The notes beneath the pieces are model-generated. The model searched no databases. It was not told where the DNA came from and was given only the letters and a program-made list of their open reading frames with translations. Of a stretch of 64,000 bases of DNA, positions 3,288 to 63,394 are shown piece after piece. The stretch covers positions 1-64,000 of IMG/VR virus record IMGVR_UViG_3300023184_000024, one strand, 5' to 3'. Within the stretch, counting starts at the first letter, position 1; every line of letters begins with the position of its first letter. Made by a program: the position numbers and the translations under genes.

Positions 3288-3288
3288 T

Positions 3289-4602: not shown

Positions 4603-4629
4603 AATAAAGCCACCCACGGTGGCTTTATT
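4603..4629 (+). terminator. intrinsic terminator
   Basis: AATAAAGCCACC-CAC-GGTGGCTTTATT, preceded by a second hairpin at 4578-4597. Confidence 0.8.
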
Positions 4630-4655
4630 CTTTTGTATTGTGGAAATTTATACGT

Positions 4656-4661
4656 TAAATA
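4656..4661 (+). promoter_or_regulatory. T4-late-like promoter TAAATA (representative copy)
   Basis: The same motif precedes genes at 21765, 22326, 23354, 28616, 37196, 42631, 45111, 53070, 58416, 61433 and 63399 (+), and 1277, 41707, 42518, 45176 and 52160 (-). Confidence 0.75.
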
Positions 4662-4666
4662 TCTAA

Positions 4667-5305
4667 ATGATACATGCACAGCACATACACAATGTTTTTG
4701 ATTTAGATGAAGTTGATCGTATTAAAAAACTCTTGTCCTTGGTTCCTGCACAAGACCATATTAAAAATAGGTCAATTGTGACCAACGGGTTTACATCCAA
4801 GGATCCGATTTACCTAGCTATAAAAAAACTTGTAATTGACCGCATCAATACAGTGTGTGAACACAAGGTATCGAACCTAACAGTTGGCATGCACTTGATA
4901 ACAAGAGACCCATTTGGTATACACAGCGATGCGCCAGGCAAGGGCGACAATGGTAGTGGGATTGCCTATTTGGTTCCGTTAGAAATGGTTCGCAACGACA
5001 GTGCCAAACCAACGTCAAGTACCATCATTTTTGATCAAGTCTGGACAGACACCACATCAATAGAAGATTACATTGCCAGTGGCCCTGAAAAAGTTGCTAG
5101 TCCGGCAACACATGTTTGGCCCATGCTGTCCGAAAAGTGCGATCCTGCTTGGGCGCCCTACCTCAGCGTCAAGCTTGTGGCCGAGTGGCAAATTGGTTCC
5201 GTTATAGTCTGGGATCGAAGGTTGTTGCATGCCAGTGATGATTTTTTGGCTGCAGGATTAATTGAAAAATCAGCCTTGGTTCTCTTTACTAATTCGCAGT
5301 CATGA
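4667..5305 (+). CDS. 2OG-Fe(II) oxygenase-like protein
   Basis: HSD (HxD) ... VWDRRLLHAS. Confidence 0.65.
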   Translation: MIHAQHIHNVFDLDEVDRIKKLLSLVPAQDHIKNRSIVTNGFTSKDPIYLAIKKLVIDRINTVCEHKVSNLTVGMHLITRDPFGIHSDAPGKGDNGSGIAYLVPLEMVRNDSAKPTSSTIIFDQVWTDTTSIEDYIASGPEKVASPATHVWPMLSEKCDPAWAPYLSVKLVAEWQIGSVIVWDRRLLHASDDFLAAGLIEKSALVLFTNSQS

Positions 5306-6738: not shown

Positions 6739-7153
6739 TATGAACTTATCTGTGGGGCATTGTCGTGGTACGAGTATGAGTCTTTGTGTCACAGTCAACG
6801 GTGAAGAAATTTACAAAGCTGACAGCATTGATGAGCCAACAATCATAATTGAGCATAGTGCAATACTACCATTGAGCTTGATTTTTGATGTTGGCAACAA
6901 AAGCGACTCAGACACTGTGATTGACAGCAATGGTAAAATACTAGAAGACAAGTTTATACAAGTAGATCGCTTGCTGTTGGACGGGCTAGATATAAAACCT
7001 TGGGTGTTACAAAGCCGAGTGTTTGAGTTTAACTCAAACAACGGCATGACCAAAACCAATTGCTTTGCTTACAATGGACAAGCCTCTATGAATGTTGAGC
7101 AAACTGATTTATTAAAATACTTTTTAGAATTGATGGTGAAAAATGATTACTAA
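6725..7153 (+). CDS. beta-rich hypothetical protein (paralog of 61980..62414)
   Basis: NKSDSDTVIDSNGKILEDK...YNG. Confidence 0.7.
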   Translation: MPKLSMNLSVGHCRGTSMSLCVTVNGEEIYKADSIDEPTIIIEHSAILPLSLIFDVGNKSDSDTVIDSNGKILEDKFIQVDRLLLDGLDIKPWVLQSRVFEFNSNNGMTKTNCFAYNGQASMNVEQTDLLKYFLELMVKNDY

Positions 7154-10304: not shown

Positions 10305-11378
10305 ATGACTAAGCGACTATCGCGCCTATTGTCTGAGGTTGCCGCAGAAGTCCTGACAGAGCTCAAGGACAAGCACAATTTCACCGACAAAGAACTAGAC
10401 CGTATCAAAGCCCGTATCAAATCTACCGGGTACGGATTTCCCATTGGACTAGCACTGATGGACATCACTGACATTTGGATCGACTATGAAGTTCAGCGTG
10501 ACGTCATTGTCAAGCATGTGCTCAACATCATTCGAAAATTTGATCCAAGGATTGTTGGTGCGGCCAGTTGTGTGAGACTTCCTAAAAGCAAGTTTCCCAA
10601 CAGATACTATGCATATGATGGACAGCACCGAAGCCTGGCAATGTGGATTTTAGGCTACACTCATATCCCTGCCTGCTATGTTGAAACAGACAATGAACGT
10701 TTTGCCAGTGAAGCATTTGAGATTCTCAACGACTCTGGTATCAAGAAAATCGGCAAGCCGGACCTACATCGTATTCGCTTGAATCTTGTGGACAAGGGCA
10801 GTGAAGACAAAGCCAATTTACAGGCTAGAACTTTGCAGGATCAGTTTGACATCACAGATGTGGACTTGCAAGAATCTGCACATAGGGAGAACCCAAAGAA
10901 GTGCGGCCCTAATCAACACTGGTTCAGTCACTTTGACTATGCTTACAAAGGCATCAAACAAGATGCCAGCGGTGAAGTGATCAAAGACATTCTCACAGCA
11001 ATTAAAACTGTGTTTCCAGAGCAAGATGAAATTGACCAAGGTGTTTACATTGGACTGTTGCAGTTGGCAAACCTCAACAAAGAGCTGGTACTCAAACAGC
11101 CTGCCAATTGGATGATACAGATCTTGCGTGACGGTGTGGCCAAGTCGTTTACATCCAGCCACATGGCACATGATATGTCCAAGGCCCAGTGGAAACACGC
11201 CATTGGATCGTGGAGTGCCCCGGATGCCATGAGCAAGTTCCTGCGTGAGATGTACAAACTGCATGGCGGCAAATTGATTGTGCCCACACAAGGACGTGGC
11301 ATGGGTATCCTACCCGACGAAGACGGCAGAACATTCTTGTGTGATGCCATCAAGCCTGCATTGAAAGGACTAGTATGA
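10305..11378 (+). CDS. DGQHR/ParB-Srx-like domain protein
   Basis: YEVQR...YAYDGQHR...F..LN; GGAG RBS. Confidence 0.75.
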   Translation: MTKRLSRLLSEVAAEVLTELKDKHNFTDKELDRIKARIKSTGYGFPIGLALMDITDIWIDYEVQRDVIVKHVLNIIRKFDPRIVGAASCVRLPKSKFPNRYYAYDGQHRSLAMWILGYTHIPACYVETDNERFASEAFEILNDSGIKKIGKPDLHRIRLNLVDKGSEDKANLQARTLQDQFDITDVDLQESAHRENPKKCGPNQHWFSHFDYAYKGIKQDASGEVIKDILTAIKTVFPEQDEIDQGVYIGLLQLANLNKELVLKQPANWMIQILRDGVAKSFTSSHMAHDMSKAQWKHAIGSWSAPDAMSKFLREMYKLHGGKLIVPTQGRGMGILPDEDGRTFLCDAIKPALKGLV

Positions 11379-40159: not shown

Positions 40160-40721
40160 TGCCGATGGCGTACTCTTAAACTGGGAGTATGCTTTTAGTA
40201 TCTGGATGGAACAGCACGGGTTTGAAAAAATACCCGGTGGCGATTTAAACTACGACATTGGTGAACGTTACAACATTTCCTGGGATCAAGGGAAAAAACT
40301 AATCAAGATGTTCAACGAATCAGCATCTATTGGATTTTTGCCTCCCTTGCGTGATGCCATGTACTATGTCAAGAGACTGCACGAAGAACATGGCTATGTG
40401 TTTCACTGTATTACTAGCCTGAGTTCCGATGTCAATGCACAGCGTTTGAGAGAAATGAATCTAAGCAAGTTGTTTGGGGACACCGTGTTTCAACGAATTG
40501 TGTGTTTAGAAACAGGTGCAGACAAAAACGATGCCTTGGAACCTTACAGAGATAGCGGATGTTGGTGGGTCGAAGACAAACCAGAAAATGCCGAGGTTGG
40601 CCACAGCATGGGCTTACGTTCTATATTAATGGAACATGGACACAACATGACTCACCATAACAATGATATTCCTGTGGTCAAGAATTGGAAAGAAATTTAC
40701 GATATTGTGGTTGATCAGTGA
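40092..40721 (+). CDS. HAD-family 5'(3')-deoxyribonucleotidase-like protein
   Basis: DADGVL...ITS...K...VEDK..N. Confidence 0.85.
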   Translation: MDTKLSNHKKPQKHNPKQLILVDADGVLLNWEYAFSIWMEQHGFEKIPGGDLNYDIGERYNISWDQGKKLIKMFNESASIGFLPPLRDAMYYVKRLHEEHGYVFHCITSLSSDVNAQRLREMNLSKLFGDTVFQRIVCLETGADKNDALEPYRDSGCWWVEDKPENAEVGHSMGLRSILMEHGHNMTHHNNDIPVVKNWKEIYDIVVDQ

Positions 40722-41701
40722 CCACAGGCAGCAACACAGGCATACAACTTTCCGTGTGCTATGCTGGGCAATGCCCAAGTTTTTTCCACTAGGTCAAACC
40801 AATCGATACAGTGCTCTAAGCTGTGATGTTTGGCATTGTTTTCTTTGACCATGTCTTTGAATTGGCTATTGCCAGGCTGATGCATGGTACCAGGAAAGAA
40901 CCCTAGAAAACAACACGGGTATATAGATCCGTCAGCAGCCACATAAATTTCTTTTTGTTTTATGTGAGCACATTTTATTTCTGCGTCATCGTTGACCCAG
41001 GGTATTTTCTTTGTGTGATCAAACCAGGTCACATGACTTTCAAGCAACACATCAACCTTGGGTGGCTCGGGTTCGGGACTGCCCAACCAATGACTAAATT
41101 CGCCATCTCTTGTGAACACCGGTCCTTGATTGCGTCCGTGATCTCGTAGTACGAACTCCGAAAACCCTAGTTGACTGCTCATTGCTCGACATGCATCAAG
41201 CTGATGTTGATTGTGTGTGAATGGAATAAACTTCCAAACAGCGTTGCCGCCTACAGCAATCAAGGCCTTGGCATTTTCTAGTATTTTCCCCCATTGGGTA
41301 TCTTGGCGATACAAGCTGTGTGTGTCTTCAAGACCGTCTAATGCAAACAGCACTTTGATTCGAGGATTACTTAATTGCTGCCACCAAGCAGGAGAACGAG
41401 TACTGCCGTTGGTTTCAATTTGTATGTGCGCACTGCTGTTGTCTAAAAAATAGTCAACAATGGCCAGGGCATCACTGGCCAGACTAAAGTCCCCAAGGTT
41501 GCCATTGAAGTTTACACGATTGATTTGCTTTAGGAACGCAGGAGTGAATATGTGTTGAATATCATCAAGTGATAATTCAGTCAATGGGTAACCACCGTTG
41601 AACTCCGATCCCCGATAGTTGCGCATACACATGGGACACCGGGCATTGCATCGAGTGCTGAGTTCAATGTGCAATGCCCGAATTTGGTCTACTTTGATCA
41701 T
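40715..41701 (-). CDS. radical SAM protein with twitch/SPASM domain
   Basis: CNARCPMC, TNG, DG, G.IYPCC, C...CG. Confidence 0.9.
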   Translation of the reverse strand: MIKVDQIRALHIELSTRCNARCPMCMRNYRGSEFNGGYPLTELSLDDIQHIFTPAFLKQINRVNFNGNLGDFSLASDALAIVDYFLDNSSAHIQIETNGSTRSPAWWQQLSNPRIKVLFALDGLEDTHSLYRQDTQWGKILENAKALIAVGGNAVWKFIPFTHNQHQLDACRAMSSQLGFSEFVLRDHGRNQGPVFTRDGEFSHWLGSPEPEPPKVDVLLESHVTWFDHTKKIPWVNDDAEIKCAHIKQKEIYVAADGSIYPCCFLGFFPGTMHQPGNSQFKDMVKENNAKHHSLEHCIDWFDLVEKTWALPSIAHGKLYACVAACGH

Positions 41702-43750: not shown

Positions 43751-44386
43751 ATGCAACTAAAAAGCTTTGGTTGTAGCTTTGTGTTTGGCAGCGACCTGCG
43801 TGATACCGGCACCCATGCTACTCCCAGTCAATTAACTTGGCCCGCACTGTTGGCCCGACAGTTAGGACACGAATATGCGTGTCATGCTTGTCCGGGTGTG
43901 GGCAATCTCTACATACTAGAACAATTATTAAATGAATTAACCAGCAATGATCCTGCTGTGTATGTTGTAAATTGGACCTGGATCGATCGTTTTGATTACA
44001 CAGAGCATGACAATTCCTGGGCCAGTTTGCGTCCTGGCGACGATAACAGCACTGCCAGGTTCTATTATAAAAATCTACATTCTCAATATCGGGACAAGCT
44101 CACAACACTGTCGTTGATCAAGCTGGCAATTGATGCACTCCTACAGAAAAAGCAAAGTTTCATAATGACTTACATGGATGATTTAATCTTTGAAACACAA
44201 TGGCATACCAGTCCTGCCATTGCCAGTATGCAGGAGTATGTGCAGCCGTATCTGCGCAATTTTGATGGTTTGAATTTTTTAGCTTGGGCTCAACACAACA
44301 ACTTTGAAATAAGCCCAACTCTGCACCCACTGGAGGCAGCACACAGTGCCGCTGCCAATTTAATACTGAATCAAAGCTTGGTGTAG
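43751..44386 (+). CDS. SGNH/GDSL-like hydrolase
   Basis: FGCSFVFG, WP.L, G.GN, WT..DR, C-terminal HP. Confidence 0.7.
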   Translation: MQLKSFGCSFVFGSDLRDTGTHATPSQLTWPALLARQLGHEYACHACPGVGNLYILEQLLNELTSNDPAVYVVNWTWIDRFDYTEHDNSWASLRPGDDNSTARFYYKNLHSQYRDKLTTLSLIKLAIDALLQKKQSFIMTYMDDLIFETQWHTSPAIASMQEYVQPYLRNFDGLNFLAWAQHNNFEISPTLHPLEAAHSAAANLILNQSLV

Positions 44387-45099
44387 ACAAAATACAGTCT
44401 ATCGTTGGCGTCTTTTTTAAAGGTTTCCAATTTTAAATTGTAGCGTTCTGCAAACTCATTTACTACTTCGAACGTCCAAGGAAATATTTCCACATACGGC
44501 CCTGTCTTGTGCGTGATTCCGGGATTGGCTCGCAAATAGAATCGACCGCCAGGTTTCAATAAATTCACACAGTGTGCAAAACGTGCTTCGATTTCCGCAC
44601 GATCATTGAAGTTTATTGAACCCAGTGCCATGATCACATCATGTGATTCAGGCTTGACCTTGTAGTCTAGAATGTCTACTTCGTAGTCAGCACAGTTGTT
44701 GTAGGGATCAATACCAATTAGGTTGTTGATACGCCCTTTAAACGGATGATATCCACATCCCACGTCTAGCACCCGTTCAGGATTTAGCTTGTTGATTTCT
44801 TCAGCCAACTCCCATCCGGTGTGTTCATAGTCACCAGTCCTGGGCTTCCATATTTCACTGAAGAAACGCAGGATATAGCGTTCACTTAGGTCATTGACAA
44901 TGTCTTTTAATGTGCCTACATAATCGCAGGGCAAGTGCAGTTCTGCTTCCACTGCATCTTTGAACTTTTTGTAACGGGCCGGAGTCCAAGGTAGGTCTTG
45001 TATCTGCGTGTCTGCGTCAACAGTGACGTTGGCGTACTTGGGTAAATTAAAAGAGTCCTGCAAATTTTTGCAGATTAGGTTAAAAATTTTGGTGTTCAT
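44371..45099 (-). CDS. class I SAM methyltransferase with N-terminal ACP-like region
   Basis: VLDVGCG, GID, LLKPGG. Confidence 0.85.
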   Translation of the reverse strand: MNTKIFNLICKNLQDSFNLPKYANVTVDADTQIQDLPWTPARYKKFKDAVEAELHLPCDYVGTLKDIVNDLSERYILRFFSEIWKPRTGDYEHTGWELAEEINKLNPERVLDVGCGYHPFKGRINNLIGIDPYNNCADYEVDILDYKVKPESHDVIMALGSINFNDRAEIEARFAHCVNLLKPGGRFYLRANPGITHKTGPYVEIFPWTFEVVNEFAERYNLKLETFKKDANDRLYFVYTKL

Positions 45100-45191: not shown

Positions 45192-46169
45192 ATGTCAATC
45201 AAAAAATTATTGCTAGCCGCTTTATTAATGCCAATTATGGCATTTGCTTGGGAACCCACCAAACCTGTACAGGTTTATATTGGAAATACACCGGGCGCAG
45301 GTAACGAAATGGCCTTTAGGAAACTGGCTGAAATCGTTCAGAAACATAATCCCAAATTTGTTTATGTTGTACAAAACATTCCCGGGGCAGATTCAGTTAT
45401 TGCTAACAACCGGTTTTTAGAAGCACCCAATGATGGCTATACAATTAACTTGCCCAGCCACATGAGTAGCTATGTTACAAATGACATTTGGGAAAAGTCA
45501 ATTAAGAAATACAATTATGACTCATTTATTGATGTGCTCACAATGGGCAAATCACCATTGGTCCTAGTTGCTGGTGTCAAAAGCGGCATCAACACCCCAC
45601 AGGAGTTTGTGAAGTATATTCAAAGTGGTAGAACAATCAGTATTGCCATTGGTGGAGGCGCACATCGTACAGCATTTGAATACTTAATGGAAAAAGGTCG
45701 GGGCAATAAAGACACAGTCAAACCTATTAAATTTAACGGTCCAATGCCAGCCGTGACCAGTGCCGCAAGCTATGATGGTAAAACAGGTACGGAATTTGCT
45801 ATTATTCCTATTGCGGTTGCAAAAGCATTAGTTGACGCGGGCAAGGTTAAACCAATTGGCTTTACTGGTACACAACGGATGGCACAGTTTCCTAATGTTC
45901 CGTTGTTGCGTGATGTAGCACCTGGCATCAATGTGTATGCTGCCTGGAGTATTCAATTGCCGCCTGGGACAAGTAAAGATATTGTTGAGTGGTACCAACA
46001 GCAGTTTAGCAAAGCAGTGCGTTCAGCAGAGTACAAAGAATACACAGATGCCAATGTTATATTCTACGCAGAAGATGAACTTACACCTGCAGGATTAAAG
46101 CGTCACATGGATGAACTACGTGCGGCATTTATTCCTGTGTTAAGCAAAATTGATTTAGGTAAAGAATGA
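45192..46169 (+). CDS. Bug/TctC tripartite tricarboxylate transporter substrate-binding protein
   Basis: Signal peptide; PGAG, N.PGA, PNDGYT, FPNVP, P.GT. Confidence 0.88.
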   Translation: MSIKKLLLAALLMPIMAFAWEPTKPVQVYIGNTPGAGNEMAFRKLAEIVQKHNPKFVYVVQNIPGADSVIANNRFLEAPNDGYTINLPSHMSSYVTNDIWEKSIKKYNYDSFIDVLTMGKSPLVLVAGVKSGINTPQEFVKYIQSGRTISIAIGGGAHRTAFEYLMEKGRGNKDTVKPIKFNGPMPAVTSAASYDGKTGTEFAIIPIAVAKALVDAGKVKPIGFTGTQRMAQFPNVPLLRDVAPGINVYAAWSIQLPPGTSKDIVEWYQQQFSKAVRSAEYKEYTDANVIFYAEDELTPAGLKRHMDELRAAFIPVLSKIDLGKE

Positions 46170-46748
46170 ATGTCTTTACCTAAAAGAATATTCTTTGCAG
46201 GTGTACCAGGATCTCGTTGGTCCGGGGTTGCACAACTATTAGAAACTGTACCAGGGTTTAACACAAGCGATCGCACACCCGAGCGCACGTTTATCTTTAA
46301 ACCCTTTTCAGATCATTTAGGCGCATACTTTGGTTCGGGCATGGAATTCCCACTGGATTTAAACCCTGCTAATATTGATAGCGCACACACTACATTGGAT
46401 GGCTGTAGATTAATTAAAGCACATGAGTGGGCATACCATTTAGATGCAATTAAGCAACAGTACCCCGAAGATTGGATCATAATGGTATATCGTCCAGACA
46501 CTATTAGTTTTGCCTGGTGGAATGGTGCAGGCGGGTTTAATATTACATATCCCAAGTATGATGCATTTAAAGATGCCACAAATATGATGTGTGAAATCGC
46601 GCAAATGAATAAATCTATCCTGGAGTTTTCGTATAAACACAATGCGACTTGGAATCATTTAACACCCCAATGGGTATTAGATAATTTTGGTGTCAACAGA
46701 GAAGTTGACCACAAGTTTCATGACATGCTAATTACTATTATAAAATGA
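46170..46748 (+). CDS. P-loop sulfotransferase-like protein
   Basis: FFAGVPGSRWS, HLGAYF, IKAH, YR, ITYP.Y. Confidence 0.6.
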   Translation: MSLPKRIFFAGVPGSRWSGVAQLLETVPGFNTSDRTPERTFIFKPFSDHLGAYFGSGMEFPLDLNPANIDSAHTTLDGCRLIKAHEWAYHLDAIKQQYPEDWIIMVYRPDTISFAWWNGAGGFNITYPKYDAFKDATNMMCEIAQMNKSILEFSYKHNATWNHLTPQWVLDNFGVNREVDHKFHDMLITIIK

Positions 46749-47374
46749 AATATATCTTTGTAGCCGGTGCTCCTGGCAGTAAATGGAGCAGTGTAGTCAA
46801 AAACATCTACTATAGTCCTGATATCGATCGGTCAGACTATAGAGATGAATGGACTTATTATCATGACGCTTCGGGTACTCGGGAACTAATGCACCTGGGT
46901 GCTTACTTTGACCCGGGAATGATTAGCCCGTTGCCTGAGGATTTGACCACGTTGTCAAGGCAGCAACTAGAAGAGATATTTGCTGAGCCATTTCAATTTA
47001 AAGAATCTCGAGGTGTGCGCATTATCAAAAGCCATGTGTTCTCAAATCACATTGACTATTTGCGCGAACTATTCCCTGAAACACCCATTGTAATCGTGCA
47101 TCGCAGTGATGACGCCTGCCTGGGCTGGTGGGTCAAGTGTGGTCATTTCGACATCACTTATCCTGATTATCATGAGTATTTTAAAGATTTAAAAACAATG
47201 GCCCGTATCATTAAAAGCCAAAATGCAGACATCTTAACAGCATGGTGGAAATACAATGATTGTCCGGTAATGGACAACAATCTTCGATTGGCTGCGGCCT
47301 TGGGCATAGATGCACCTCCCCCAGAATACACACAAGAATATGCAGTAAACGACATAAGGGTAAAAGTAATATGA
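46745..47374 (+). CDS. P-loop sulfotransferase-like protein (paralog of 46170..46748)
   Basis: FVAGAPGSKWS, HLGAYF, IKSH, HR, ITYP.Y. Confidence 0.6.
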   Translation: MKYIFVAGAPGSKWSSVVKNIYYSPDIDRSDYRDEWTYYHDASGTRELMHLGAYFDPGMISPLPEDLTTLSRQQLEEIFAEPFQFKESRGVRIIKSHVFSNHIDYLRELFPETPIVIVHRSDDACLGWWVKCGHFDITYPDYHEYFKDLKTMARIIKSQNADILTAWWKYNDCPVMDNNLRLAAALGIDAPPPEYTQEYAVNDIRVKVI

Positions 47375-48036
47375 TAACAGACGAATTTAAAAGCAGTTGG
47401 GATTTCACTAAAAGCACCAGCACATACCATTTTGATCCTACGAAACTGGATCGTTTTGAAGATGTGATCGCACATCTTGGACACATTGAACCCACCTGGA
47501 CAGCGGATGTAGCAGACATTGTTGCTAATAGCAAGCCAGCAACCTGGGAAACACGTGGCTACAAAGGCGAGGGCGTGCTGCCTCCACGTGAAGATTTGGC
47601 GGCCGAAGAATATGACCTAGAGCGTGTGGGTGCAGACCCAAAAATGACAATCACTCATTTAAATTGGAACATGCCCGAATCGCTTAAAAAGATTTCCCGG
47701 CAATTTGCTCTAGATGACTGCATGGAGCGTATTCACGTGCAACGCCCGGGGGAGGTGTGGAATCTACACATGGATAAACTACAGAAATGGAACCCCGAAG
47801 ATCCCAGTCGTATAATGCGTATCTTTGTTCAGCTCACAGACTGGCAGCCAGGGCAGTTCTGGGAGTACGGCAACCATCACTGGAATCAATGGCGTGCCGG
47901 CGATGTTTCAACCTTTGACTGGGCCAACATGCCACACAGCACAGCCAATGCAGGACACCATCCCCGAGTTACACTACAGTTAACAGGCGTTATCACTGAT
48001 CGCACACAAGAATACTTGGCCAATATACCCAGATGA
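47371..48036 (+). CDS. 2OG-Fe(II) oxygenase (Asp/Asn beta-hydroxylase-like)
   Basis: PG....HMD...PHSTAN...PR..LQ. Confidence 0.75.
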   Translation: MITDEFKSSWDFTKSTSTYHFDPTKLDRFEDVIAHLGHIEPTWTADVADIVANSKPATWETRGYKGEGVLPPREDLAAEEYDLERVGADPKMTITHLNWNMPESLKKISRQFALDDCMERIHVQRPGEVWNLHMDKLQKWNPEDPSRIMRIFVQLTDWQPGQFWEYGNHHWNQWRAGDVSTFDWANMPHSTANAGHHPRVTLQLTGVITDRTQEYLANIPR

Positions 48037-48659
48037 AAACACTGTTGATCATTACTGGCCCACAAGGCTCAGGCAATCATTTATGGAGCAAGATCTTTGC
48101 ACTACATCCTGATGTACATGGTTGGCATGCTCTGCTACACGAATACTGGATAGGGCATGATCAGGAGCCTTTTGCGGCCTATTGGGAGAACCCCGATTTA
48201 CTTCAAGATTTTGACTGGAGTCGTTGTGATCATTATGTCACCAGTGTCAGCACACCTTACATGCTCAACGGTGAGCGCACTGTGCCCAACATTGTGCAGT
48301 TTGCTGCCACTGCCATGGGACTGGGTATATGTGTAAAAATTGCCATCATAGGTCGTGATCGTAATATATTAACCTATCAAGAACAGCGTGTGCGTGGCGA
48401 TGCCACCTATGATACAGCATTAAAAGAATATGAAAAACTCAGGACCTGGAGCCCGGTGTTCTTGAGTTATGAATTACTGCATCTTTATCGGGATCTTTAT
48501 CTACAACAAATTGCCAATCAATTGGAATTCCCTGTGGATTACTCTAGTGCCCAGCTGGCAAATATTTTAACAGATGATACTAACAGTAAATATTTCAACC
48601 CTGTGGATCATCATCCCACTGATGATCTAGCACGACACTCTTCAAGGAAATGGAAATAA
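48033..48659 (+). CDS. P-loop sulfotransferase-like protein
   Basis: IITGPQGSGNHL...HP, IGRD, SYE.L. Confidence 0.65.
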   Translation: MKTLLIITGPQGSGNHLWSKIFALHPDVHGWHALLHEYWIGHDQEPFAAYWENPDLLQDFDWSRCDHYVTSVSTPYMLNGERTVPNIVQFAATAMGLGICVKIAIIGRDRNILTYQEQRVRGDATYDTALKEYEKLRTWSPVFLSYELLHLYRDLYLQQIANQLEFPVDYSSAQLANILTDDTNSKYFNPVDHHPTDDLARHSSRKWK

Positions 48660-48660
48660 C

Positions 48661-49464
48661 ATGCCACAACGTATATTAATCATGGGCTTGCCTGGCGCAG
48701 GCAAAACATATCTAGCACAGCACATACTCGAACACTTGCAAAACGAAAAGAAACGAGTGCAATGGCTCAACGCTGACGATGTGCGTAAAAAATACAATGA
48801 CTGGGATTTCAGTCACGAAGGACGTATTCGCCAAAGTCTGCGCATGCGAGAACTAGCAGATGCCATGACTGATGTAGACTATGTTATCTGCGACTTTGTT
48901 GCTCCGCTGGTTGAAATGCGCAACAACTTCAAAGCAGATTGGACCGTCTGGGTTGATACCATAGACAAGGGCAGATACGAAGACACTAATCGAGCCTTTG
49001 TCCCTCCCGAAGTCTACGACTTCAGAATCACAGAACAACACGGGGAAAAGTGGGGCGAGTTTGTTGCCGCACACATACTAGATAATCGTCGTCGTCCTGT
49101 ATTTGATTGGCAGCGAGAAACAGTGCAGATGTTGGGTCGCTGGCAGCCTTGGCATGCCGGTCACCGTGCATTATTTGAACGAGCCATAGCCAAAACTGGG
49201 CAAGTTTGTATAATGATCCGGGATTGTCAGGGCTGGCAGGGATCCAACCCTTTTGCCATAGAACAAGTCAAAGGGTATATTCGACGAGACCTAGACATGC
49301 TGTATCAAGGGCAGTATGAAATACAAGTTGTGCCCAACATTGTCAACATCACCTACGGCAGAGATGTGGGTTATCGGATTGAACAAGAATCATTTGATGC
49401 TGCCACACACTCTATTTCAGCTACTAAAATACGAAAAGAATTAAAAGACCAAGGTCTTTTATAA
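48661..49464 (+). CDS. cysC: adenylylsulfate kinase fused to a HIGH-family nucleotidyltransferase
   Basis: GLPGAGKT, NADDVR, DFS..GR, F.PP; C-terminal GRWQPWHAGH...NPF...ISATKIR. Confidence 0.8.
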   Translation: MPQRILIMGLPGAGKTYLAQHILEHLQNEKKRVQWLNADDVRKKYNDWDFSHEGRIRQSLRMRELADAMTDVDYVICDFVAPLVEMRNNFKADWTVWVDTIDKGRYEDTNRAFVPPEVYDFRITEQHGEKWGEFVAAHILDNRRRPVFDWQRETVQMLGRWQPWHAGHRALFERAIAKTGQVCIMIRDCQGWQGSNPFAIEQVKGYIRRDLDMLYQGQYEIQVVPNIVNITYGRDVGYRIEQESFDAATHSISATKIRKELKDQGLL

Positions 49465-50126
49465 TGAAAACAGTGACCCAGACTGACATTGAAGTGTGCT
49501 CGTGTGGACCATTGGTGTATGTGAGAACACTGAAATGTGCCAGCACCTTTTTTTATTGGAATTTTACAAAAACTTTTGGTTGGCATGAAATCGACTACCA
49601 AGACATTGACTGGGACCGTCAACATGTGTTTGGACATCTGGCTGAACCCATTACACGCAGACACAAAGCCGTGGCCGAGTACATTGACATGCACAGTCTT
49701 GGTCATGAATATCTCAACAATGAAAATCTACAGCAATTGTTGGATGAAACACCAACCTTGGACTGCCATTCTGCGCCGTATTTAGATACATTTCAGACTG
49801 ATGCTTATCGAATTGATTGGATTCCGTTGTCAGACAACAACGATGACAACATTGACATAACAGCTCGATTGTTGCGCACCTACGGCGTCGATAATGTTCA
49901 ATGGGACCGTGATTTTGATCACAGTGCCAGTGCATCAAAAAAAGCTGTGGAATTAAAATTAAAAGAAACATGGGAAAAGAGATATTCCACGTACAATGAT
50001 TTACCTGCATGGTTGAAACGTCATTACTCTGATGATATAACCTTGTACCGTGTAGTTACATCAAAGTTTAATCCTGATGCGTCCAGCTGGACTGACACCA
50101 GTTGGATACGACACCCAACGCCATGA
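49464..50126 (+). CDS. sulfotransferase family 2-like protein
   Basis: YV..LKCASTF...EP..R...D.HS...Y..D..LY. Confidence 0.65.
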   Translation: MKTVTQTDIEVCSCGPLVYVRTLKCASTFFYWNFTKTFGWHEIDYQDIDWDRQHVFGHLAEPITRRHKAVAEYIDMHSLGHEYLNNENLQQLLDETPTLDCHSAPYLDTFQTDAYRIDWIPLSDNNDDNIDITARLLRTYGVDNVQWDRDFDHSASASKKAVELKLKETWEKRYSTYNDLPAWLKRHYSDDITLYRVVTSKFNPDASSWTDTSWIRHPTP

Positions 50127-51049
50127 TCTTGCCTGACTTTGACATACTAGAATTCCGCAATTTGCAACTGGAATATTCGGGCATGGATCACCCTGATTTT
50201 TGCGCTGATCCGGCGCATTTTAAAAAATACACAAAGAAAATACACTATCAATACAACAGTCGAGGTTTTCGAGACAGGGAATGGCCTGCCAATCCGCAAC
50301 TACGAGATTGTGTATGGTGCTTTGGGGACAGTTTCACAGCTGGTGTGGGCAGTCCAGGGACAGACACCTGGGTGCGTCAGGTTGAACAAGCACTGGGCCG
50401 ACCTTGCGTCAACATCAGCTTGGATGGCGCCAACAACCAATGGATAGCAGAAAAAATACAGCGTGTTCAACGGGAAATCAATCCCAGATATATCATTGTG
50501 CAATGGAGTTATCTTCATAGAGTGCCGGCTTCTGCCGACGATTTTGCCGACCGTGTCAACGATGCATGGCAACGATTTTATGAAAATATCCGGGACCCTG
50601 GTTGGCCCGACTGTGCAGACCACAAGAATTTTGTCAATTTACCTGAAGAAATAAAACAAGAAATTGTCAAAGACTTTGGTATTCCTGGTTACTTCGAATA
50701 CCAAAATTCTGAATTAATTGTCAACGACTTTAAATTGGATAATCTCAAACTTAGGCACCATGCACCTTGGATTCCGAGCACACACGAAGAAGACCTGGCA
50801 AGAACACTGGACGGTGTTAAACGTGTACAACGTTGGGGCGAAACAAAAATTCTTCACAGTTGTGTGCCGTTGTTTGCACCAAAAAATATACGCAAGTTAT
50901 TTTACCAGCACTTGTCTGACCAACAATATCATTATATTCCAGAGTTCACACCGCTTGACCTTGCCCGAGATGGCTGGCATTATGACATCAAAACTAGTGA
51001 GAAATTTGCTGAATTGGCAAAGGCGCACTGGCATCAGCAGAATTGGTAA
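50123..51049 (+). CDS. SGNH-like hydrolase
   Basis: YNSRGFR, FGDSFT.G, N....GA.N, QWS, DGWH. Confidence 0.75.
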   Translation: MILPDFDILEFRNLQLEYSGMDHPDFCADPAHFKKYTKKIHYQYNSRGFRDREWPANPQLRDCVWCFGDSFTAGVGSPGTDTWVRQVEQALGRPCVNISLDGANNQWIAEKIQRVQREINPRYIIVQWSYLHRVPASADDFADRVNDAWQRFYENIRDPGWPDCADHKNFVNLPEEIKQEIVKDFGIPGYFEYQNSELIVNDFKLDNLKLRHHAPWIPSTHEEDLARTLDGVKRVQRWGETKILHSCVPLFAPKNIRKLFYQHLSDQQYHYIPEFTPLDLARDGWHYDIKTSEKFAELAKAHWHQQNW

Positions 51050-52151
51050 TTAACTGCGGGTTCCATACCTGCTGTTCAGACTCAATTTGAGCCTGCACTA
51101 CAAGCTCAGTGACTGGCTTGCCCACGGTGGGATTTTCTGCAATCCATTGATTGTAGATTTCTCTGCATTGTTCAAAGTTGCGTATCATAAAACGCTTTTC
51201 TGCTAGAGTTTGTTTTTTAATAGGAACGTTGCCAGATAATATACCTAGGTTAATCATTTTTTCAATGCTGTGTGTGGCAGCCATGTAATTTTTGACATGT
51301 GTTCTTACAAAACTACGTTGCTCCACCGGCAAGTGGGCAACAACATTACTGGGAGCAGATTCGGGCAAGTCTTTGTCAATGTTGGTTGATCCTAGTTTTA
51401 GCAGGCCGTTACTGTTGTCCATGGCCAGTGCTCCTATGTTACTGGTATAATAATTACACCGATTCCAGTCGCTGAAACTAATGCCATAGGTATCTTTGAA
51501 AGTTTGTATTTTTTTCTGGCCTGCAAATATTGGCAGATTCAGCGCATAATTTTCTATGTCAGGCATGTGTCGTTCATAATGAAAATACGAACTTATCCCA
51601 AAATGGCGTTCACTCCATTCTAAATATAGACGATAGTCTTCGAGTATTTTAACCATTACTTCAGGATCAACATCAACCCCGTCGCGATATATTTCATAAA
51701 ATGCACTGATTTTCTCCTGTCCCGAATAGACATTTTTCTTTTTGGTTATTCTATTCAATGCCCATGATATGGCATGCTCAAACACATTTTCTCGACGAGC
51801 TGAAATAATAAAGAAATTGTCATTGAGGTATTGATAAAAAGGCATCAACTCGCTCATGTCATCGTTGCGATTTCGCAGATGATAGTGTGCCAAGCGTGAT
51901 GTTTTAAAATGATCAACGCTGCTCAGCATGTCCACAATTTCCGTCAATGATTGATGGTATCCCCAAGTGGCCTGGTGTTTGCAGACAATTTCTCGATTGA
52001 AATCTGCACTGTAAAATTTGTTTAGACCATTGACAAGTTCGTGCAAATTAATAACAGGCTGACCATAGTCCTGCAACTGCATAAAAACTGTGATCACTCG
52101 TTGCAGTAAAGTACTGCCAACGGCATCTGGCGTGAGTATAAGTACGTTCAT
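50994..52151 (-). CDS. sulfotransferase-like hypothetical protein
   Basis: ILTPDAVGSTLL, LHE, RREN.FE..ISW, YE. Confidence 0.55.
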   Translation of the reverse strand: MNVLILTPDAVGSTLLQRVITVFMQLQDYGQPVINLHELVNGLNKFYSADFNREIVCKHQATWGYHQSLTEIVDMLSSVDHFKTSRLAHYHLRNRNDDMSELMPFYQYLNDNFFIISARRENVFEHAISWALNRITKKKNVYSGQEKISAFYEIYRDGVDVDPEVMVKILEDYRLYLEWSERHFGISSYFHYERHMPDIENYALNLPIFAGQKKIQTFKDTYGISFSDWNRCNYYTSNIGALAMDNSNGLLKLGSTNIDKDLPESAPSNVVAHLPVEQRSFVRTHVKNYMAATHSIEKMINLGILSGNVPIKKQTLAEKRFMIRNFEQCREIYNQWIAENPTVGKPVTELVVQAQIESEQQVWNPQLITNSADASAPLPIQQISH

Positions 52152-58484: not shown

Positions 58485-60746
58485 ATGCAGAACCCGGAAA
58501 TTGAACAAATTGTAGACAATGCAGTCAAGATTGCACGTAGTAAAACTCATGCGTATGTGTTGACCGAGCATTTACTGCTGTCTATGTTGGCCCATGCCCC
58601 ATTTAGAACTGTGTTGGTCAAGTTTGGCACAGATGTAGACATGCTGGAAAAAGAAGTAAACGGATATCTCGACAGTCTAGTCAATCTCATTGACATCAGC
58701 GAGGATCTCAGGCCAAGAAAAACCAATACCTTGGAACGATTGTTTAATCGTGCACTCACGCAGGTGATGTTTACTGGCCGACGTGCTATTACCACAGCAG
58801 ATTTGTATTTGTCAATAATGAATGAATCAAACAGCCATGCACATTATTTCTTGTTAAAATACGGAGTATCCAAACAAGAGTTTATTAAATTCTGGGACTC
58901 TCATTACAATCACAACGATTCCCGCATTGATGATGCGCAGGCCAACGAAATCCTTGAAGAATACTGTATCAACATGTCCGGCCTGGCCCAGGCAGATAGA
59001 TTGGAACCAGTGATTGGTCGCGAACAAGAGTTAGAAGAATTAATCACAGTGCTGGCTCGTAGGTTCAAAGCCAATGTACTCATGGTGGGTGACCCCGGCG
59101 TAGGAAAAACAGCCATAGTTGAAGGACTGGCACAGCGTATTGCAAAAAATACAGTGCCAGAATTTTTAAAGAATCACGAAGTCTGGGGTTTAGAAATTGG
59201 TAATCTGTTGGCCGGCAGTAAGTATCGCGGAGACTTTGAAGAAAAACTCAAGCATATTATCAAGGCCCTGGAACACAAAAAAAATTGTGTGCTGTTCATC
59301 GACGAAGCGCACACCATGAAAGGTGCAGGGTCAACCAGTGGATCCAGTCTGGACTTTGCCAACATGATCAAGCCGGCCATTACCAAAGGTGTGCTCAAAG
59401 TTGTGGCAAGTACAACCTGGGAAGAGTACTACGAAAGCTTTGAAAAGGATCGTGCGTTGATGCGCCGTTTCCATAGACTCAGCATCGACGAACCGTCACG
59501 TGAAAACACAGAAAAGATCTTGATTGGCCTGAGCCCACGTTTGGAAAAGTTTCACAATGTCATGATTGACACTGACGCAATCACAGCGGCAGTGGAACTG
59601 AGTGCAAGATACATTCATGATAAAAAGAACCCCGACAAAAGCATTGATCTAATTGATGCTGCCTGTGCCAGAGAACGTGTCAAGGACCAAGGCAGTGTCA
59701 CCATCAACAAAGATTTGATTCTTGCGCAGGTCAGTCGTATTGCCAATGTGCCAATGGATAGACTGCAAAATGCACAAAGTAAACGAATACTTGAATTGGA
59801 AAGCAATGTCAAACAAAGAATTTACGGCCAAGACCAAGTCATTGAGCCAGTGCTGGAAAGAGTCTACGTTAGTTTTGCCGGGCTGAACAATCCCACTAAA
59901 CCAATGTCTAGTTTCTTGTTTTTAGGACCAACTGGCACAGGTAAAACAGAATTTGCAAAAACTTTGGCAGATAATCTAGACATGAAATTGTTAAAATATG
60001 ACATGAGCGAGTACCAGGAAAAACACACTGTGAGCAGTTTAATCGGTGCACCCCCGGGCTACGTGGGCTACGAAGACAGCAACTTAGCCGGCGGCAAACT
60101 GATCAACGATCTGAGCAAAAATCCATTTTCAATTTTGCTGTTTGACGAAATTGAAAAAGCGCACCCAGATGTCAGTAATATATTGTTGCAAATGTTGGAC
60201 GAAGGCAAGATCACAGGAAGCAACGGCAAGACAGTTGACTGTAAGAACACCATCATCATCATGACTTCAAACTTGGGTGCAAGAGACAACGAAAACAACA
60301 ACATTGGTTTCAGCGTTGATCTAACTCGCACCGGCAGTGAAGACAAGGCTTTGAAAGATTTCTTCAAGCCCGAATTGCGCAATCGCATTGACATGATTTG
60401 TAAATTTAATCCATTGAATCAATTGGCTATTAAGAAGATTGTGGTCAAGTTCATCGACGAACTCAAGCAAAGTTTAGTGGAACGACAAGTTAAACTCAAC
60501 TTCAGCGAAGCTGCCATTGATCTACTGGCCAAAGAAGGCTATGATCCTAAAATGGGTGCAAGACCGTTGTCACGAAAAATTGATGAATTAATACGTGTAC
60601 CATTGAGTCGCAAAATTTTGTTCGAACGTCTTGAAAATTGTGTCGTAGACGTTGATGTTGCTGATGAGAAAATTAAATTTTCTCACATTGATTCCGCTGT
60701 AGTACAACCCAAGGTTGATAATAATGGATACATTGTCCTTGACTAA
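58485..60746 (+). CDS. clpA: ATP-dependent Clp protease ATP-binding subunit ClpA
   Basis: GDPGVGKT and GPTGTGKT; no M-domain; IGF loop; both early (58423-58451) and late (58416) promoters. Confidence 0.92.
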   Translation: MQNPEIEQIVDNAVKIARSKTHAYVLTEHLLLSMLAHAPFRTVLVKFGTDVDMLEKEVNGYLDSLVNLIDISEDLRPRKTNTLERLFNRALTQVMFTGRRAITTADLYLSIMNESNSHAHYFLLKYGVSKQEFIKFWDSHYNHNDSRIDDAQANEILEEYCINMSGLAQADRLEPVIGREQELEELITVLARRFKANVLMVGDPGVGKTAIVEGLAQRIAKNTVPEFLKNHEVWGLEIGNLLAGSKYRGDFEEKLKHIIKALEHKKNCVLFIDEAHTMKGAGSTSGSSLDFANMIKPAITKGVLKVVASTTWEEYYESFEKDRALMRRFHRLSIDEPSRENTEKILIGLSPRLEKFHNVMIDTDAITAAVELSARYIHDKKNPDKSIDLIDAACARERVKDQGSVTINKDLILAQVSRIANVPMDRLQNAQSKRILELESNVKQRIYGQDQVIEPVLERVYVSFAGLNNPTKPMSSFLFLGPTGTGKTEFAKTLADNLDMKLLKYDMSEYQEKHTVSSLIGAPPGYVGYEDSNLAGGKLINDLSKNPFSILLFDEIEKAHPDVSNILLQMLDEGKITGSNGKTVDCKNTIIIMTSNLGARDNENNNIGFSVDLTRTGSEDKALKDFFKPELRNRIDMICKFNPLNQLAIKKIVVKFIDELKQSLVERQVKLNFSEAAIDLLAKEGYDPKMGARPLSRKIDELIRVPLSRKILFERLENCVVDVDVADEKIKFSHIDSAVVQPKVDNNGYIVLD

Positions 60747-61979: not shown

Positions 61980-62414
61980 ATGGATACTTCAACGCTGACA
62001 TTTGATGCAGTGGCATCAGCACCTGGATTAACTCTAACTGTTACTTTTGATCAAGAAACAGTGTTTGATGGCCCAGTAGATGGCAATGTTGTGCATGTAA
62101 AACATCAATTCAATGATGACAGTGACCTCGATCATCTGCTAGAAATTACCATGCAAGGCAAAACCGCCAGAGATACCCAAGTCGACGAGCATGGCAACAT
62201 TGTCAGCGATGTTACATTAACTGTTTCAAATATTGCGCTAGACGACATTGTGCTCAGCAGTTCCTTGCTGGCAAACTGCAATTATCATCATAATTTCAAT
62301 GGCAGTCAACCTGATATCATTGATGAATTTCATGGTATAATGGGCTGTAATGGCACAGTGAAAATACCATTCAAATCGCCAATCTACATTTGGCTGCTTG
62401 AAAACATGGCCTGA
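61980..62414 (+). CDS. beta-rich hypothetical protein (paralog of 6725..7153)
   Basis: GKT..DT.VD..GNI..D...MG.NG...F..P.Y.WLL. Confidence 0.75.
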   Translation: MDTSTLTFDAVASAPGLTLTVTFDQETVFDGPVDGNVVHVKHQFNDDSDLDHLLEITMQGKTARDTQVDEHGNIVSDVTLTVSNIALDDIVLSSSLLANCNYHHNFNGSQPDIIDEFHGIMGCNGTVKIPFKSPIYIWLLENMA

Positions 62415-63394
62415 TGACAACAGTTGATCAACTACACGAAATAGTTTTTGAAGCCACAAGTCATTGTAATCTGCATTGTCCACAATGCGAGCGTTATGAT
62501 CAAGATGGATACCTTCATCCAAAGTTAACCCCTCAACACATCGATTTTGATCTTGTCAAGCAAAACATCAATGTTGCCCAGCTTGTTGGATTAAAGAATG
62601 TAACCTTTGAAGGCAACTACGGCGACATATTGATGCACCCACGTGCTCGAGAGTTGTTTGATTTATTTTCAACAGTGGAACGTGTTGCAGCCACCACCAA
62701 CGGAAGTTTACGCAACAAAGCTTGGTGGGCCGACCTAGGGCGCAACAGCAAAGTTGATGTTATGTTCAGCATAGATGGACTTGAAGATACCAACCATGTT
62801 TACCGCATCAATTCAAACTGGCAACGCATCATGGAAAATGCAGAAAGTTTTATTTCTGCTGGTGGACAAGCATACTGGAAATTTATAGTATTCAAGCACA
62901 ACGAACACCAACTTGATCAAGCAAGAGAACTGAGCAAGACCATGGGCTTCCAAGATTTCCATTGGCAGTACAGTGATCGCAGTTGGTTTCAAGGAAGAGT
63001 TTGGCCTGTCAAAGTTGAAGGGCAGTATCTCTACGACCTAGAACCCGCAAAATCAGTCACTGCCAATACCTCTACTCCAGCTGTGATTACTTTGGACAAG
63101 ATTAAAAAGAAGAATTATACCAATCCTGTGCAGAAGTGTTTTTTGCCACAAGGCAGGCTCTACATCAACAGCAAAGGGCATGTTTTGCCCTGTTGTATGA
63201 CCAGTGGCAAAACCTGGGGGCACGATCTTGAAAGCCGTATGTGGCAACGTTTAATAGGCGACATAAACAGCATTGATCTACATCATCACACACTTGAAGA
63301 TATATTAAACAGTGACTTTTATCAGCATCGTTTGATCAACAGTTTTTCCGGCAGTCCCTACACGCATCCTTCGTGTGTGGCCTATTGCGGATAA
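62414..63394 (+). CDS. radical SAM protein with twitch/SPASM domain (paralog of 40715..41701)
   Basis: CNLHCPQC, GN.GD, TNGS.R...WW, DGLEDT, WKFI.F.HN.HQ, PCC. Confidence 0.9.
   Translation: MTTVDQLHEIVFEATSHCNLHCPQCERYDQDGYLHPKLTPQHIDFDLVKQNINVAQLVGLKNVTFEGNYGDILMHPRARELFDLFSTVERVAATTNGSLRNKAWWADLGRNSKVDVMFSIDGLEDTNHVYRINSNWQRIMENAESFISAGGQAYWKFIVFKHNEHQLDQARELSKTMGFQDFHWQYSDRSWFQGRVWPVKVEGQYLYDLEPAKSVTANTSTPAVITLDKIKKKNYTNPVQKCFLPQGRLYINSKGHVLPCCMTSGKTWGHDLESRMWQRLIGDINSIDLHHHTLEDILNSDFYQHRLINSFSGSPYTHPSCVAYCG

Follow-up and report, generated by a model that had tools for sequence, protein, structure and literature searches.

Sulfate activation is known to be carried out by two enzyme types, Sat and CysDN. 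In eukaryotic PAPS synthases (PAPSS1/2) and in the bacterial Sat-CysC fusion of Aquifex (2gks), an APS kinase and an adenylyltransferase of the HxxH nucleotidyltransferase superfamily sit on one chain, and in the gene clusters of sulfur oxidisers sat accompanies aprMBA. SAR11, the most abundant marine bacteria, are described as having aprBA, 'cysC' and cysQ but no sat or cysDN (PMC5069961). In the present study we examined a jumbo-phage gene encoding a 267-residue protein in which an APS-kinase-like domain is fused to a small nucleotidyltransferase (NT). The gene lies within a window of 64,000 nucleotides, positions 1 to 64,000 of IMG/VR record IMGVR_UViG_3300023184_000024. The preliminary description of this ORF, made from the sequence alone, reported a CysC-like N-half and a HIGH-type nucleotidyltransferase C-half with their characteristic motifs, and inferred a stripped-down PAPS synthase. 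The ORF and all the motifs were confirmed (Table 1), and the functional reading, a kinase plus an adenylyltransferase making PAPS from sulfate, is what the comparative evidence favours, though two corrections are required. The C-half is not a detectable member of the Sat family, which the preliminary description had placed in the same superfamily, and thus the protein is not a trimmed eukaryotic-type PAPS synthase but contains a different, smaller nucleotidyltransferase that appears to do the same job. Furthermore, the architecture is not rare, belonging to a large family, fused or split, in phages, SAR11 and other Alphaproteobacteria.

Table 1. Coordinates within the 64,000-nucleotide window of the fusion gene, its domains and motifs, and neighbouring genes.
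Feature	Coordinates	Strand	Size or residues	Remarks
Whole fusion gene	48661..49464	+	267 aa	ATG start; end coordinate includes the stop codon
N-domain, predicted APS-kinase fold	48661..49092	+	1-144	Shortened lid
P-loop GLPGAGKT	48685..48708	+	9-16	K15 invariant in 47 homologues
NADDVR	48769..48786	+	37-42	Counterpart of CysC LDGDxxR; first Asp is Asn here, and in most members; D39 at least 90% conserved, R42 invariant
DFSHEGR	48805..48825	+	49-55	Counterpart of CysC GFSxEDR; F50 and R55 conserved
C-domain, minimal nucleotidyltransferase	49111..49461	+	151-267	Proposed ATP:sulfate adenylyltransferase
GRWQPWHAGH	49135..49164	+	159-168	HxGH nucleotide-binding motif; G159, R160, Q162, H165 and H168 invariant
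YGRDVGY loop	49354..49374	+	232-238	G233, R234 and G237 invariant; likely acceptor-binding loop; resembles the Sat GRD loop, but the two are not aligned by hhalign
ISATKIR	49414..49434	+	252-258	C-terminal nucleotidyltransferase motif; R258 invariant; SAR11 Sat proteins carry ISGTKIR
Two paralogous sulfotransferase-like genes	46170..47374	+	192 and 209 aa	35% identical to each other
Gene immediately upstream, probably a sulfotransferase (lead only)	48033..48659	+	208 aa	Stop codon ends one base before the ATG of the fusion
Gene of unknown function	49464..50126	+	220 aa	ATG overlaps the stop codon of the fusion by one base; not found in the related phage loci
Stf0-like sulfotransferase candidate	50994..52151	-	385 aa	

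The ORF is not a chance reading frame. It matched phrog_10255 over its full length (E 2e-48; residues 3-261 against profile positions 2-228 of 230), and 596 relatives were confirmed in viral contigs, the best 80 of which were 82-93% identical. At E<=1e-3, 2142 representatives of 50%-identity clusters were recovered. A megablast search of the 10-kb neighbourhood against GenBank phages found nothing. An AlphaFold2 model built from 47 diverse homologues had a mean pLDDT of 95 and two clear domains, while a single-sequence model gave a pLDDT of only 42.6 and was discarded.

The N-half is closest to APS kinases in both sequence and predicted fold. It matched PF01583 at E 3e-12 and the PDB APS kinase 2yvu at E 5e-7, and the top 40 Foldseek PDB hits were all APS kinases. 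Structural comparison of the model by VIA gave Z values of 18.5, 18.2 and 17.1 to 4rfv, 2yvu and 2gks, respectively, with an rmsd of 1.8 over 130 residues for the best of these, against 14.8 for the next family, a margin of about 3.5 Z units over any other kinase family. In the alignment with canonical CysC, K15, D39, R42, F50 and R55 are conserved, and F50, R55 and P82, aligned with the GFSxEDR and F(I/V)SP motifs that probably contact APS, are invariant. However, the PF01583 match covered only profile positions 4-94 of 152, TIGR00455 scored 35.6 bits against a cut-off of 138.7, and the alignment showed a 13-residue deletion in the lid and a 14-residue deletion before it. Because the lid is shortened and the first Asp of the DGD motif is Asn, the specificity or activity of the kinase could differ. 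The double Asp mutant of D87GD89N in PAPSS1 loses activity (PMC11697783).

The C-half gave no Pfam hit. No PF01747 match was found at E<=1 anywhere in the phage genome, this ORF included, and hhalign of the NT alignment against three SAR11 Sat proteins gave 9% probability (E 0.0035). Hhalign aligned H165-A-G-H168 with the Sat HRAH, but paired the YGRDVGY loop with the Sat RYGGP segment and not with the GRD loop. Of the motifs listed for Sat (PMC6607087), QxRN before HxxH is absent, the sequence being G-R-W-Q-P-W-H with Arg and the amide residue at other positions, and there is no PFR. The nearest relatives of the C-half are instead archaeal-type NMNAT and PPAT, with VIA Z values of 10.8 to PPAT 4nah, 10.8 to NadM NMNAT 2qjt and 10.6 to MjNMNAT 1f9a, the two NMNATs at 21-22% identity.

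This relationship raises the possibility of a NadR-like enzyme in reversed domain order, in which the kinase would phosphorylate nicotinamide riboside and the C-half would adenylylate NMN to give NAD, perhaps to counter NAD-depleting defence systems. The best sequence matches of the C-half are NMNAT models (NadM-type, E 1e-5; archaeal TIGR01527, E 2e-4; PDB 2qjt, E 0.01), with which it shares the GRxQPxHxGH motif and probably the NPF motif, the gene overlaps an upstream NADAR-domain gene in Sano- and Salvo-like phages, and one source names a cluster member 'nicotinamide riboside kinase'. However, all the NMNAT matches lie far below the family cut-offs (TIGR01527, 21.2 bits against 181.2; PRK01153, 23.8 against 127; NadM-Nudix, 24.9 against 397), the kinase is far closer to APS kinase than to NRK1 (Z 10.4), and no NAD-pathway gene turned up in the contexts annotated, whereas CysC, CysH, CysI, AprMBA and sulfotransferases recur. 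We thus consider this reading very unlikely. A minimal CoA synthase, with a PPAT-like adenylyltransferase and a dephospho-CoA-kinase-like 3'-kinase, would follow the same logic of adenylylation and 3'-phosphorylation, the best structural match of the C-domain is tied between PPAT and the NMNATs, and JGI names some members 'phosphopantetheine adenylyltransferase'. However, the kinase matches dephospho-CoA kinases only at Z about 11, the archaeal PPAT model scores only E 0.01, and no CoA-pathway context was seen, so that this reading is the least likely of those considered.

Gene context nevertheless ties the NT domain to APS. A family of about 310-aa marine proteins fuses the same domain to a full canonical CysC (212 bits) and sits near TPR-sulfotransferases. 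The context of P0229 itself was too short to be informative. In Sphingomicrobium, Inquilinus and a Rhodospirillaceae genome, the only Sulfotransfer_3 gene of the genome lies 1-3.5 kb from the fusion. The Sphingomicrobium MAG shows no Sat, no strong CysD and no canonical CysC, though weak, partial PAPS_reduct matches (32-45 bits) were seen in ORFs of 283-287 aa in this genome and in Pelagibacter HIMB1495. Inquilinus, the Rhodospirillaceae genome and a gammaproteobacterial MAG, on the other hand, also carry CysD-CysNC, indicating that the module is not always the only possible source of APS. In Pelagibacteraceae MAG SP38, the split kinase and NT pair closes a co-directional CbiX - CobA - sulfite reductase - CysH cluster, and that genome has no PF01747 hit and no second PF01507 hit. 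It is also conceivable that the pair makes a PAPS-like cofactor with another leaving group or an NDP-activated small molecule, as in HldE-type kinase/nucleotidyltransferase pairs or the Campylobacter O-methyl-phosphoramidate pathway, where an APS-kinase homologue appears to phosphorylate the 3'-OH of cytidine diphosphoramidate. A cluster resembling the latter, with an APS-kinase-like protein, lies on contig 2 of Pelagibacter HIMB1495, and the protein P0270 fuses this kinase type to a PF00483 sugar-phosphate nucleotidyltransferase. However, CysH, sulfite reductase and AprBA act on genuine APS, PAPS or sulfite, and the NT domain is also fused to canonical CysC, making this explanation improbable.

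In SAR11, the NT gene lies next to aprM-aprB-aprA in three different arrangements, sometimes without any kinase, and seven such genomes have no PF01583 hit at all. Among 81 SAR11 genomes, 27 of 28 AprA-positive genomes carry NT (Fisher 3e-12), NT never co-occurs with CysD-CysNC (0 of 37 against 7 of 44), and only 2 of the 28 AprA-positive genomes have Sat. These co-occurrence statistics are not corrected for phylogeny and many of the genomes are incomplete, and the association of NT with Sulfotransfer_3 within SAR11 is weak (odds ratio 3.1, p 0.047, uncorrected) and carries no weight here. The contexts demand only an APS-related activity and not a particular direction, and AprBA could supply APS from sulfite in SAR11 (PMC5069961). 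Considering also the lack of Sat homology and the presence of CysDN in several carriers, the C-half might work only in the APS-consuming direction, use phosphate instead of pyrophosphate in an ADP-sulfurylase-like reaction, or make another adenylylated anion, in which case the phage protein would depend on host APS. We regard this alternative as unlikely, though less so than the others, because the cysI-cysH-kinase-NT operon and the Sphingomicrobium sulfotransferase pair need sulfate activation and no other candidate is visible in those genomes. Furthermore, HxGH nucleotidyltransferases release pyrophosphate from an NTP, which is the ATP sulfurylase reaction in reverse.

The phage genome has no Sat and no CysD, and in the window the fusion lies among sulfotransferase-like genes, though these neighbours are called sulfotransferases only on weak evidence. 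Of 13 members of the family of the two paralogous genes, 6 hit Sulfotransfer_3 weakly, with a best E of 6e-5, below the cut-off. For the gene immediately upstream, the protein atlas found sulfotransferase clusters at a score of 0.94 with 166-175 shared features, and for the 385-aa candidate it found Stf0 sulfotransferase clusters at 0.97 (198 shared features) and 0.95, but neither gave a Pfam or PDB sequence match. A Pfam search at E<=10 left most neighbours unassigned, and profile searches of three neighbour families against PDB sequences found nothing meaningful.

Considering these results, we propose the following scenario, which we regard as more likely than not, although it rests on inference, no biochemical data existing for any member of the family. 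The C-domain, an HxGH nucleotidyltransferase of about 115 residues, may use ATP to adenylylate sulfate, giving APS and pyrophosphate. The N-domain, an APS kinase with a trimmed lid, may then phosphorylate the 3'-OH of APS to give PAPS, pulling the unfavourable first step forward. In the jumbo phage the product would feed the sulfotransferase-like genes of the surrounding variable island, independently of what the host can supply. It is slightly more likely than not, in our view, that the small domain defines a third, so far unrecognised class of ATP sulfurylase beside Sat and CysDN. It would then be the 'missing sat' of the AprBA sulfite-oxidation pathway of SAR11, would supply PAPS, together with the trimmed APS kinase, for surface sulfation in SAR11 and other Alphaproteobacteria, and would support a cryptic assimilatory sulfate pathway in at least one SAR11 lineage, jumbo phages and Casjensviridae having captured the fused form to make PAPS on their own. 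Such a class would change how sulfur pathways are read from genomes. The small gene next to aprMBA is annotated only as 'cytidyltransferase' and one 90%-identity cluster of it has 11,617 member sequences. It would also show that phages can carry a complete PAPS supply for their own sulfotransferases, and a 267-residue PAPS synthase could be useful for enzymatic sulfation.

Compared with PAPSS, the phage protein has the same order, with the kinase at the N-terminus, and the same proposed two-step chemistry, and VIA aligned 253 residues of the model over both domains of PAPSS1 (1x6v_B), though with a different domain arrangement (rmsd 18.5). It is, however, less than half the size (267 aa against about 620) and carries NAD instead of DGD in its kinase. 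With CysC it shares the predicted fold, the P-loop, the catalytic Asp, the DxxR arginine, the FSxEDR phenylalanine and arginine, and the F(I/V)xP motif, but only its first 92 residues match the Pfam profile. Compared with archaeal-type NMNAT (NadM, TIGR01527) and PPAT, with which the IS(A/G)TxIR motif is also shared, the C-half is about 50 residues shorter, has its own invariant YGR(D/G)VGY loop, and has sulfur enzymes rather than NAD or CoA enzymes as genomic partners. phrog_10255 ('kinase') of Casjensviridae (Sano, Salvo, Bacata) and Stenotrophomonas phage DLP6 has the same two-domain architecture, at 37-41% identity over 96-97% of the length, but these are small siphophages or a T4-like phage, in which the gene follows a NADAR gene, and in the Casjensviridae no sulfotransferase is annotated nearby. 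Finally, as in the sat-aprMBA clusters of sulfur oxidisers, the SAR11 NT gene stands directly upstream of aprM-aprB-aprA and a TauE sulfite exporter, which is the position and implied role of sat, but it encodes a 124-130-aa nucleotidyltransferase rather than a Sat of about 350-400 aa.

The complete virus record is 352,754 bp long and has direct terminal repeats, that is, a jumbo phage, and the window covers its first 64 kb. The ORF under study encodes 267 residues, and every motif listed in the preliminary description, namely GLPGAGKT, NADDVR and DFS..GR in the N-half and QPWHAGH and ISATKIR in the C-half, is present. The gene is real and under constraint: it matches phrog_10255 over its full length at E 2e-48, it has 596 confirmed relatives in viral contigs, the best 80 at 82-93% identity and several on contigs of 340-520 kb, and it has 2142 representatives of 50%-identity clusters at E<=1e-3, among them many full-length fusions at 35-55% identity. 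Known phages with the same architecture are Casjensviridae (Sano, Salvo, Bacata, Suzuki, Bhz60) and Stenotrophomonas phage DLP6, and Ralstonia jumbo phages carry only the kinase half. The coordinates of the features described here are collected in the following table.

Coordinates of the fusion gene, its phage neighbours and the related loci in other genomes
Sequence	Position	Strand	Feature
Window	48661..49464	+	Fusion gene (267 residues)
Window	45192-46169	+	TctC/Bug-family periplasmic solute-binding protein with an apparent signal peptide (325 aa; PF03401, E 5e-21)
Window	46170-52151		Variable island of small genes around the fusion
Window	44371-45099	-	Methyltransferase
Window	47374-48036		220-aa protein with three distant paralogues elsewhere in the genome
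Window	50102-51049		GDSL-like hydrolase
Window	58485-60746	+	753-aa protein matching phrog_4871 'ATP-dependent protease' at E 1e-243
Window	40715-41701	-	One of four paralogues of a protein of about 326 aa
Window	62414-63394	+	One of four paralogues of a protein of about 326 aa
Phage genome	211976-212809		One of four paralogues of a protein of about 326 aa
Phage genome	323047-323805		One of four paralogues of a protein of about 326 aa
Xylella phage Bacata (L001)	5565-6741		Fusion gene overlapping an upstream NADAR (COG3236) gene
Stenotrophomonas phage Bhz60 (L002)	5565-6741		Fusion gene overlapping an upstream NADAR (COG3236) gene
Pelagibacter HIMB1495 (L144)	10364-11215		Commonest SAR11 arrangement around the kinase-NT pair
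Pelagibacter HIMB1495, contig 2 (L175)	1406-7050		Cluster with a full APS-kinase domain protein
Pelagibacter HIMB1495 (L173)	566-1417		ORF with a partial PAPS_reduct match
Sphingomicrobium MAG (L174)	10-873		ORF with a partial PAPS_reduct match
SAR11 genome G041, C8	7196-7549		NT gene that looks broken
SAR11 genome G048, C1	283937-284289		NT gene that looks broken

The Pfam APS_kinase model matched residues 4-92 at E 3e-12 but covered only profile positions 4-94 of 152, and the best solved relative by sequence was the APS kinase 2yvu, at E 5e-7. A structural model built from an alignment of 47 diverse fusions had a pLDDT of 95, and the top 40 Foldseek PDB matches were all APS kinases. In a structural search that does not depend on Foldseek, residues 1-144 scored Z 18.5 (rmsd 1.8, 130 residues) to Mycobacterium tuberculosis CysC, 18.2 to 2yvu and 17.1 to the Aquifex Sat-CysC, compared to 14.8 for gluconate kinase, 13.6 for Kti12, 13.3 for PSTK, about 11 for dephospho-CoA kinases and 10.4 for NRK1. 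The alignment with canonical CysC domains showed that the P-loop, D39, R42, F50, R55, P82 and R87 are shared, though the first Asp of the DGD motif is Asn, and two segments of 13-14 residues, one of them in the lid, are missing. The D87A/D89A double mutant of PAPSS1 is reported to lose kinase activity (PMC11697783), and only the second of those two Asp residues is kept here. The N-half is thus an APS-kinase-type domain that is probably active, but not a full member of the CysC equivalog.

Residues 151-267 carry GRWQPWHAGH, NPF, YGRDVGY and ISATKIR, and G159, R160, Q162, H165, H168, G233, R234, G237 and R258 were invariant in both alignments examined. The closest profiles were NMN adenylyltransferases of the NadM or archaeal type, at E 1e-5 to 2e-4, all far below their cut-offs. 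The closest structures were PPAT 4nah (Z 10.8), NadM 2qjt (Z 10.8, 22% identity) and Methanocaldococcus jannaschii NMNAT 1f9a (Z 10.6). A reading of the whole protein as a CoA synthase, however, has little support and is very unlikely.

The genomic associations of the C-half, hereafter the nucleotidyltransferase (NT) domain, bear on what it works with. The protein P0229 and its roughly 310-aa marine relatives join the same NT domain (GRWQPWHKGH ... YGRDVGY ... ISATEVR) to a full canonical CysC (PF01583, 212 bits, positions 2-151 of 152), and the marine fusion lies next to an MFS transporter, a giant RTX-like protein, TPR-2OG-oxygenases and TPR-sulfotransferases. Another protein, P0196, has the two phage-type domains in reversed order. 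Of two metagenome proteins, P0270 and P0159, one architecture fuses the trimmed kinase to a PF00483 sugar-phosphate nucleotidyltransferase (389 aa), and the other places a DUF4118 membrane domain in front of the whole fusion (395 aa). In addition, contig 2 of Pelagibacter HIMB1495 carries a cluster of a 364-aa protein with a full APS-kinase domain (121 bits) and, as judged from the translations alone, a 245-aa protein, a 775-aa PEP-utilising-type enzyme, a 207-aa glutamine-amidotransferase-like protein and a 252-aa nucleotidyltransferase, which may resemble the Campylobacter O-methyl-phosphoramidate pathway (Cj1415-Cj1418). The possibility that the fusion belongs to a PAPS-analogue or NDP-sugar pathway nevertheless has little support, and we consider it unlikely.

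The fusion also lies close to sulfotransferase genes. In Sphingomicrobium, the 299-aa fusion is the divergent neighbour of a TPR-Sulfotransfer_3 gene (157 bits), in Inquilinus the fusion is followed by an arylsulfotransferase and a Sulfotransfer_3 gene, and in a Rhodospirillaceae genome a Sulfotransfer_3 gene lies 2.8 kb away; in each of these three genomes it is the only PF13469 hit. The Sphingomicrobium MAG has no Sat, no strong CysD and no canonical CysC, though ORFs of 283-287 aa in this MAG and in Pelagibacter HIMB1495 match only the first 100-115 positions of PAPS_reduct at 32-45 bits, which is too weak for CysD or CysH, and are a possible confounder for the claim that these genomes have no other sulfurylase. 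In the Pelagibacteraceae MAG SP38, the split pair ends a co-directional cluster of CbiX, uroporphyrinogen methylase, sulfite reductase and CysH, and that genome shows no PF01747 hit and only that single PF01507 hit. A second genome has CysH next to the kinase. ATP sulfurylase is the step for which the SP38 cluster shows no recognisable enzyme.

In SAR11, the NT gene stands beside aprM-aprB-aprA in three arrangements, NT-aprMBA-tauE without a kinase, kinase-NT-aprMBA, and kinase-NT convergent with aprMBA. In the commonest SAR11 arrangement, seen in Pelagibacter HIMB1495, the kinase-NT pair is followed by a HalD/WelO5-like 2OG-Fe(II) halogenase or hydroxylase and preceded by a creatinase-like protein, a methyltransferase and a dimethylglycine-dehydrogenase-like protein, and any link to sulfur metabolism is unclear. 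Among 81 SAR11 genomes, NT was found in 37, AprA in 28, Sat in 4, strong PF01507 hits in 7 and Sulfotransfer_3 in 23, and the strong PF01507 hit that we inspected, in genome G014, is CysD followed by CysN-CysC. Of the 28 AprA-positive genomes, 27 have NT (odds ratio 116, Fisher 3e-12) and only 2 have Sat, whereas NT and CysD never co-occurred (0 of 37 against 7 of 44, p 0.014), though these statistics are not corrected for phylogeny and the genomes are at least 80% but not fully complete. Of the 8 sulfotransferase-positive genomes without NT, 5 have a strong PF01507 (CysD-type) hit. In at least 11 genomes NT is 1.4-4 kb upstream of aprA, and seven genomes of the NT-aprMBA type have no APS-kinase-like gene at all. 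Two SAR11 genomes carry NT genes that look broken, one with an in-frame TAA and the other split into two pieces, suggesting occasional decay of the gene. Smith et al. state that SAR11 has aprBA but lacks cysDNCHIJ and sat, and their table shows 'cysC' in exactly the strains that have aprA (PMC5069961).

APS is the one metabolite common to CysC, CysH-type reductases (through PAPS), AprBA and the PAPS-dependent sulfotransferases. Considering that an HxGH nucleotidyltransferase follows these enzymes through fusions, operons and rearrangements, replaces CysDN in its distribution and sits where sat sits, the most economical explanation is that it is an ATP:sulfate adenylyltransferase, and that the pair, when fused to the kinase as in the window, is a PAPS synthase. 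We hold this inference, which rests on comparative evidence, with moderate confidence. The main alternative, that the C-half handles APS in another way or in one direction only, remains possible but is considerably less likely.

In Casjensviridae, the fusion gene overlaps the end of the upstream NADAR gene by 8 bases and lies near a MazG-like pyrophosphatase and a DNA methyltransferase, and no sulfotransferase is annotated nearby. What a PAPS synthase would do there is unexplained. A role in NAD salvage rests on this NADAR neighbour and on the weak NMNAT similarity of the C-half; however, it is contradicted by the kinase fold and by the contexts annotated in cellular genomes, and appears improbable.

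In the jumbo phage, the fusion is conserved while its neighbours vary, with gene content differing between related phages that are otherwise 85-93% identical. Around it lie two paralogues with weak but repeated Sulfotransfer_3 similarity, a 208-aa gene directly upstream that the protein atlas places near sulfotransferase clusters at a score of 0.94, and a 385-aa gene placed near Stf0 sulfotransferases at 0.97. The TctC/Bug-family binding protein, an unusual auxiliary gene, is conserved in 20 related phage loci, and the four paralogues of about 326 aa are 25-32% identical, one of them matching a radical-SAM PHROG (phrog_21308). The protein matching phrog_4871 is a large protease or AAA+ gene in the phage. 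The phage has no Sat, CysD, AprA, CysH or CysI of its own. The fusion is most similar (49-52% identity) to fused versions in two Pelagibacteraceae SAGs and about 41% identical to other alphaproteobacterial versions, though at 43% GC the phage is unlikely to be a SAR11 phage.

Public names for these proteins are inconsistent ('adenylylsulfate kinase', 'phosphopantetheine adenylyltransferase', 'nicotinamide riboside kinase', 'cytidyltransferase', 'AAA family ATPase' and 'hypothetical protein'), and none is sulfate adenylyltransferase. No paper describing this family or a non-Sat, non-CysDN sulfurylase was found in the full texts searched, which do not cover all journals, and prior description thus cannot be excluded. 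The Sat Pfam model found nothing in the whole phage genome at E<=1, and hhalign of the NT alignment against three SAR11 Sat proteins gave 9% probability, aligning HxGH with HRAH but pairing YGR with the Sat RYGG segment rather than with VGRDHAG. Of the four Sat motifs listed in PMC6607087 (QxRN, HxxH, VGRDHAG and PFR), only HxxH is clearly present. By descent, then, the C-half is not a Sat but a distinct minimal branch of the HxGH nucleotidyltransferases, and the fusion may be regarded as carrying out a known process, PAPS synthesis, with a proposed sulfurylase module that appears to be new.
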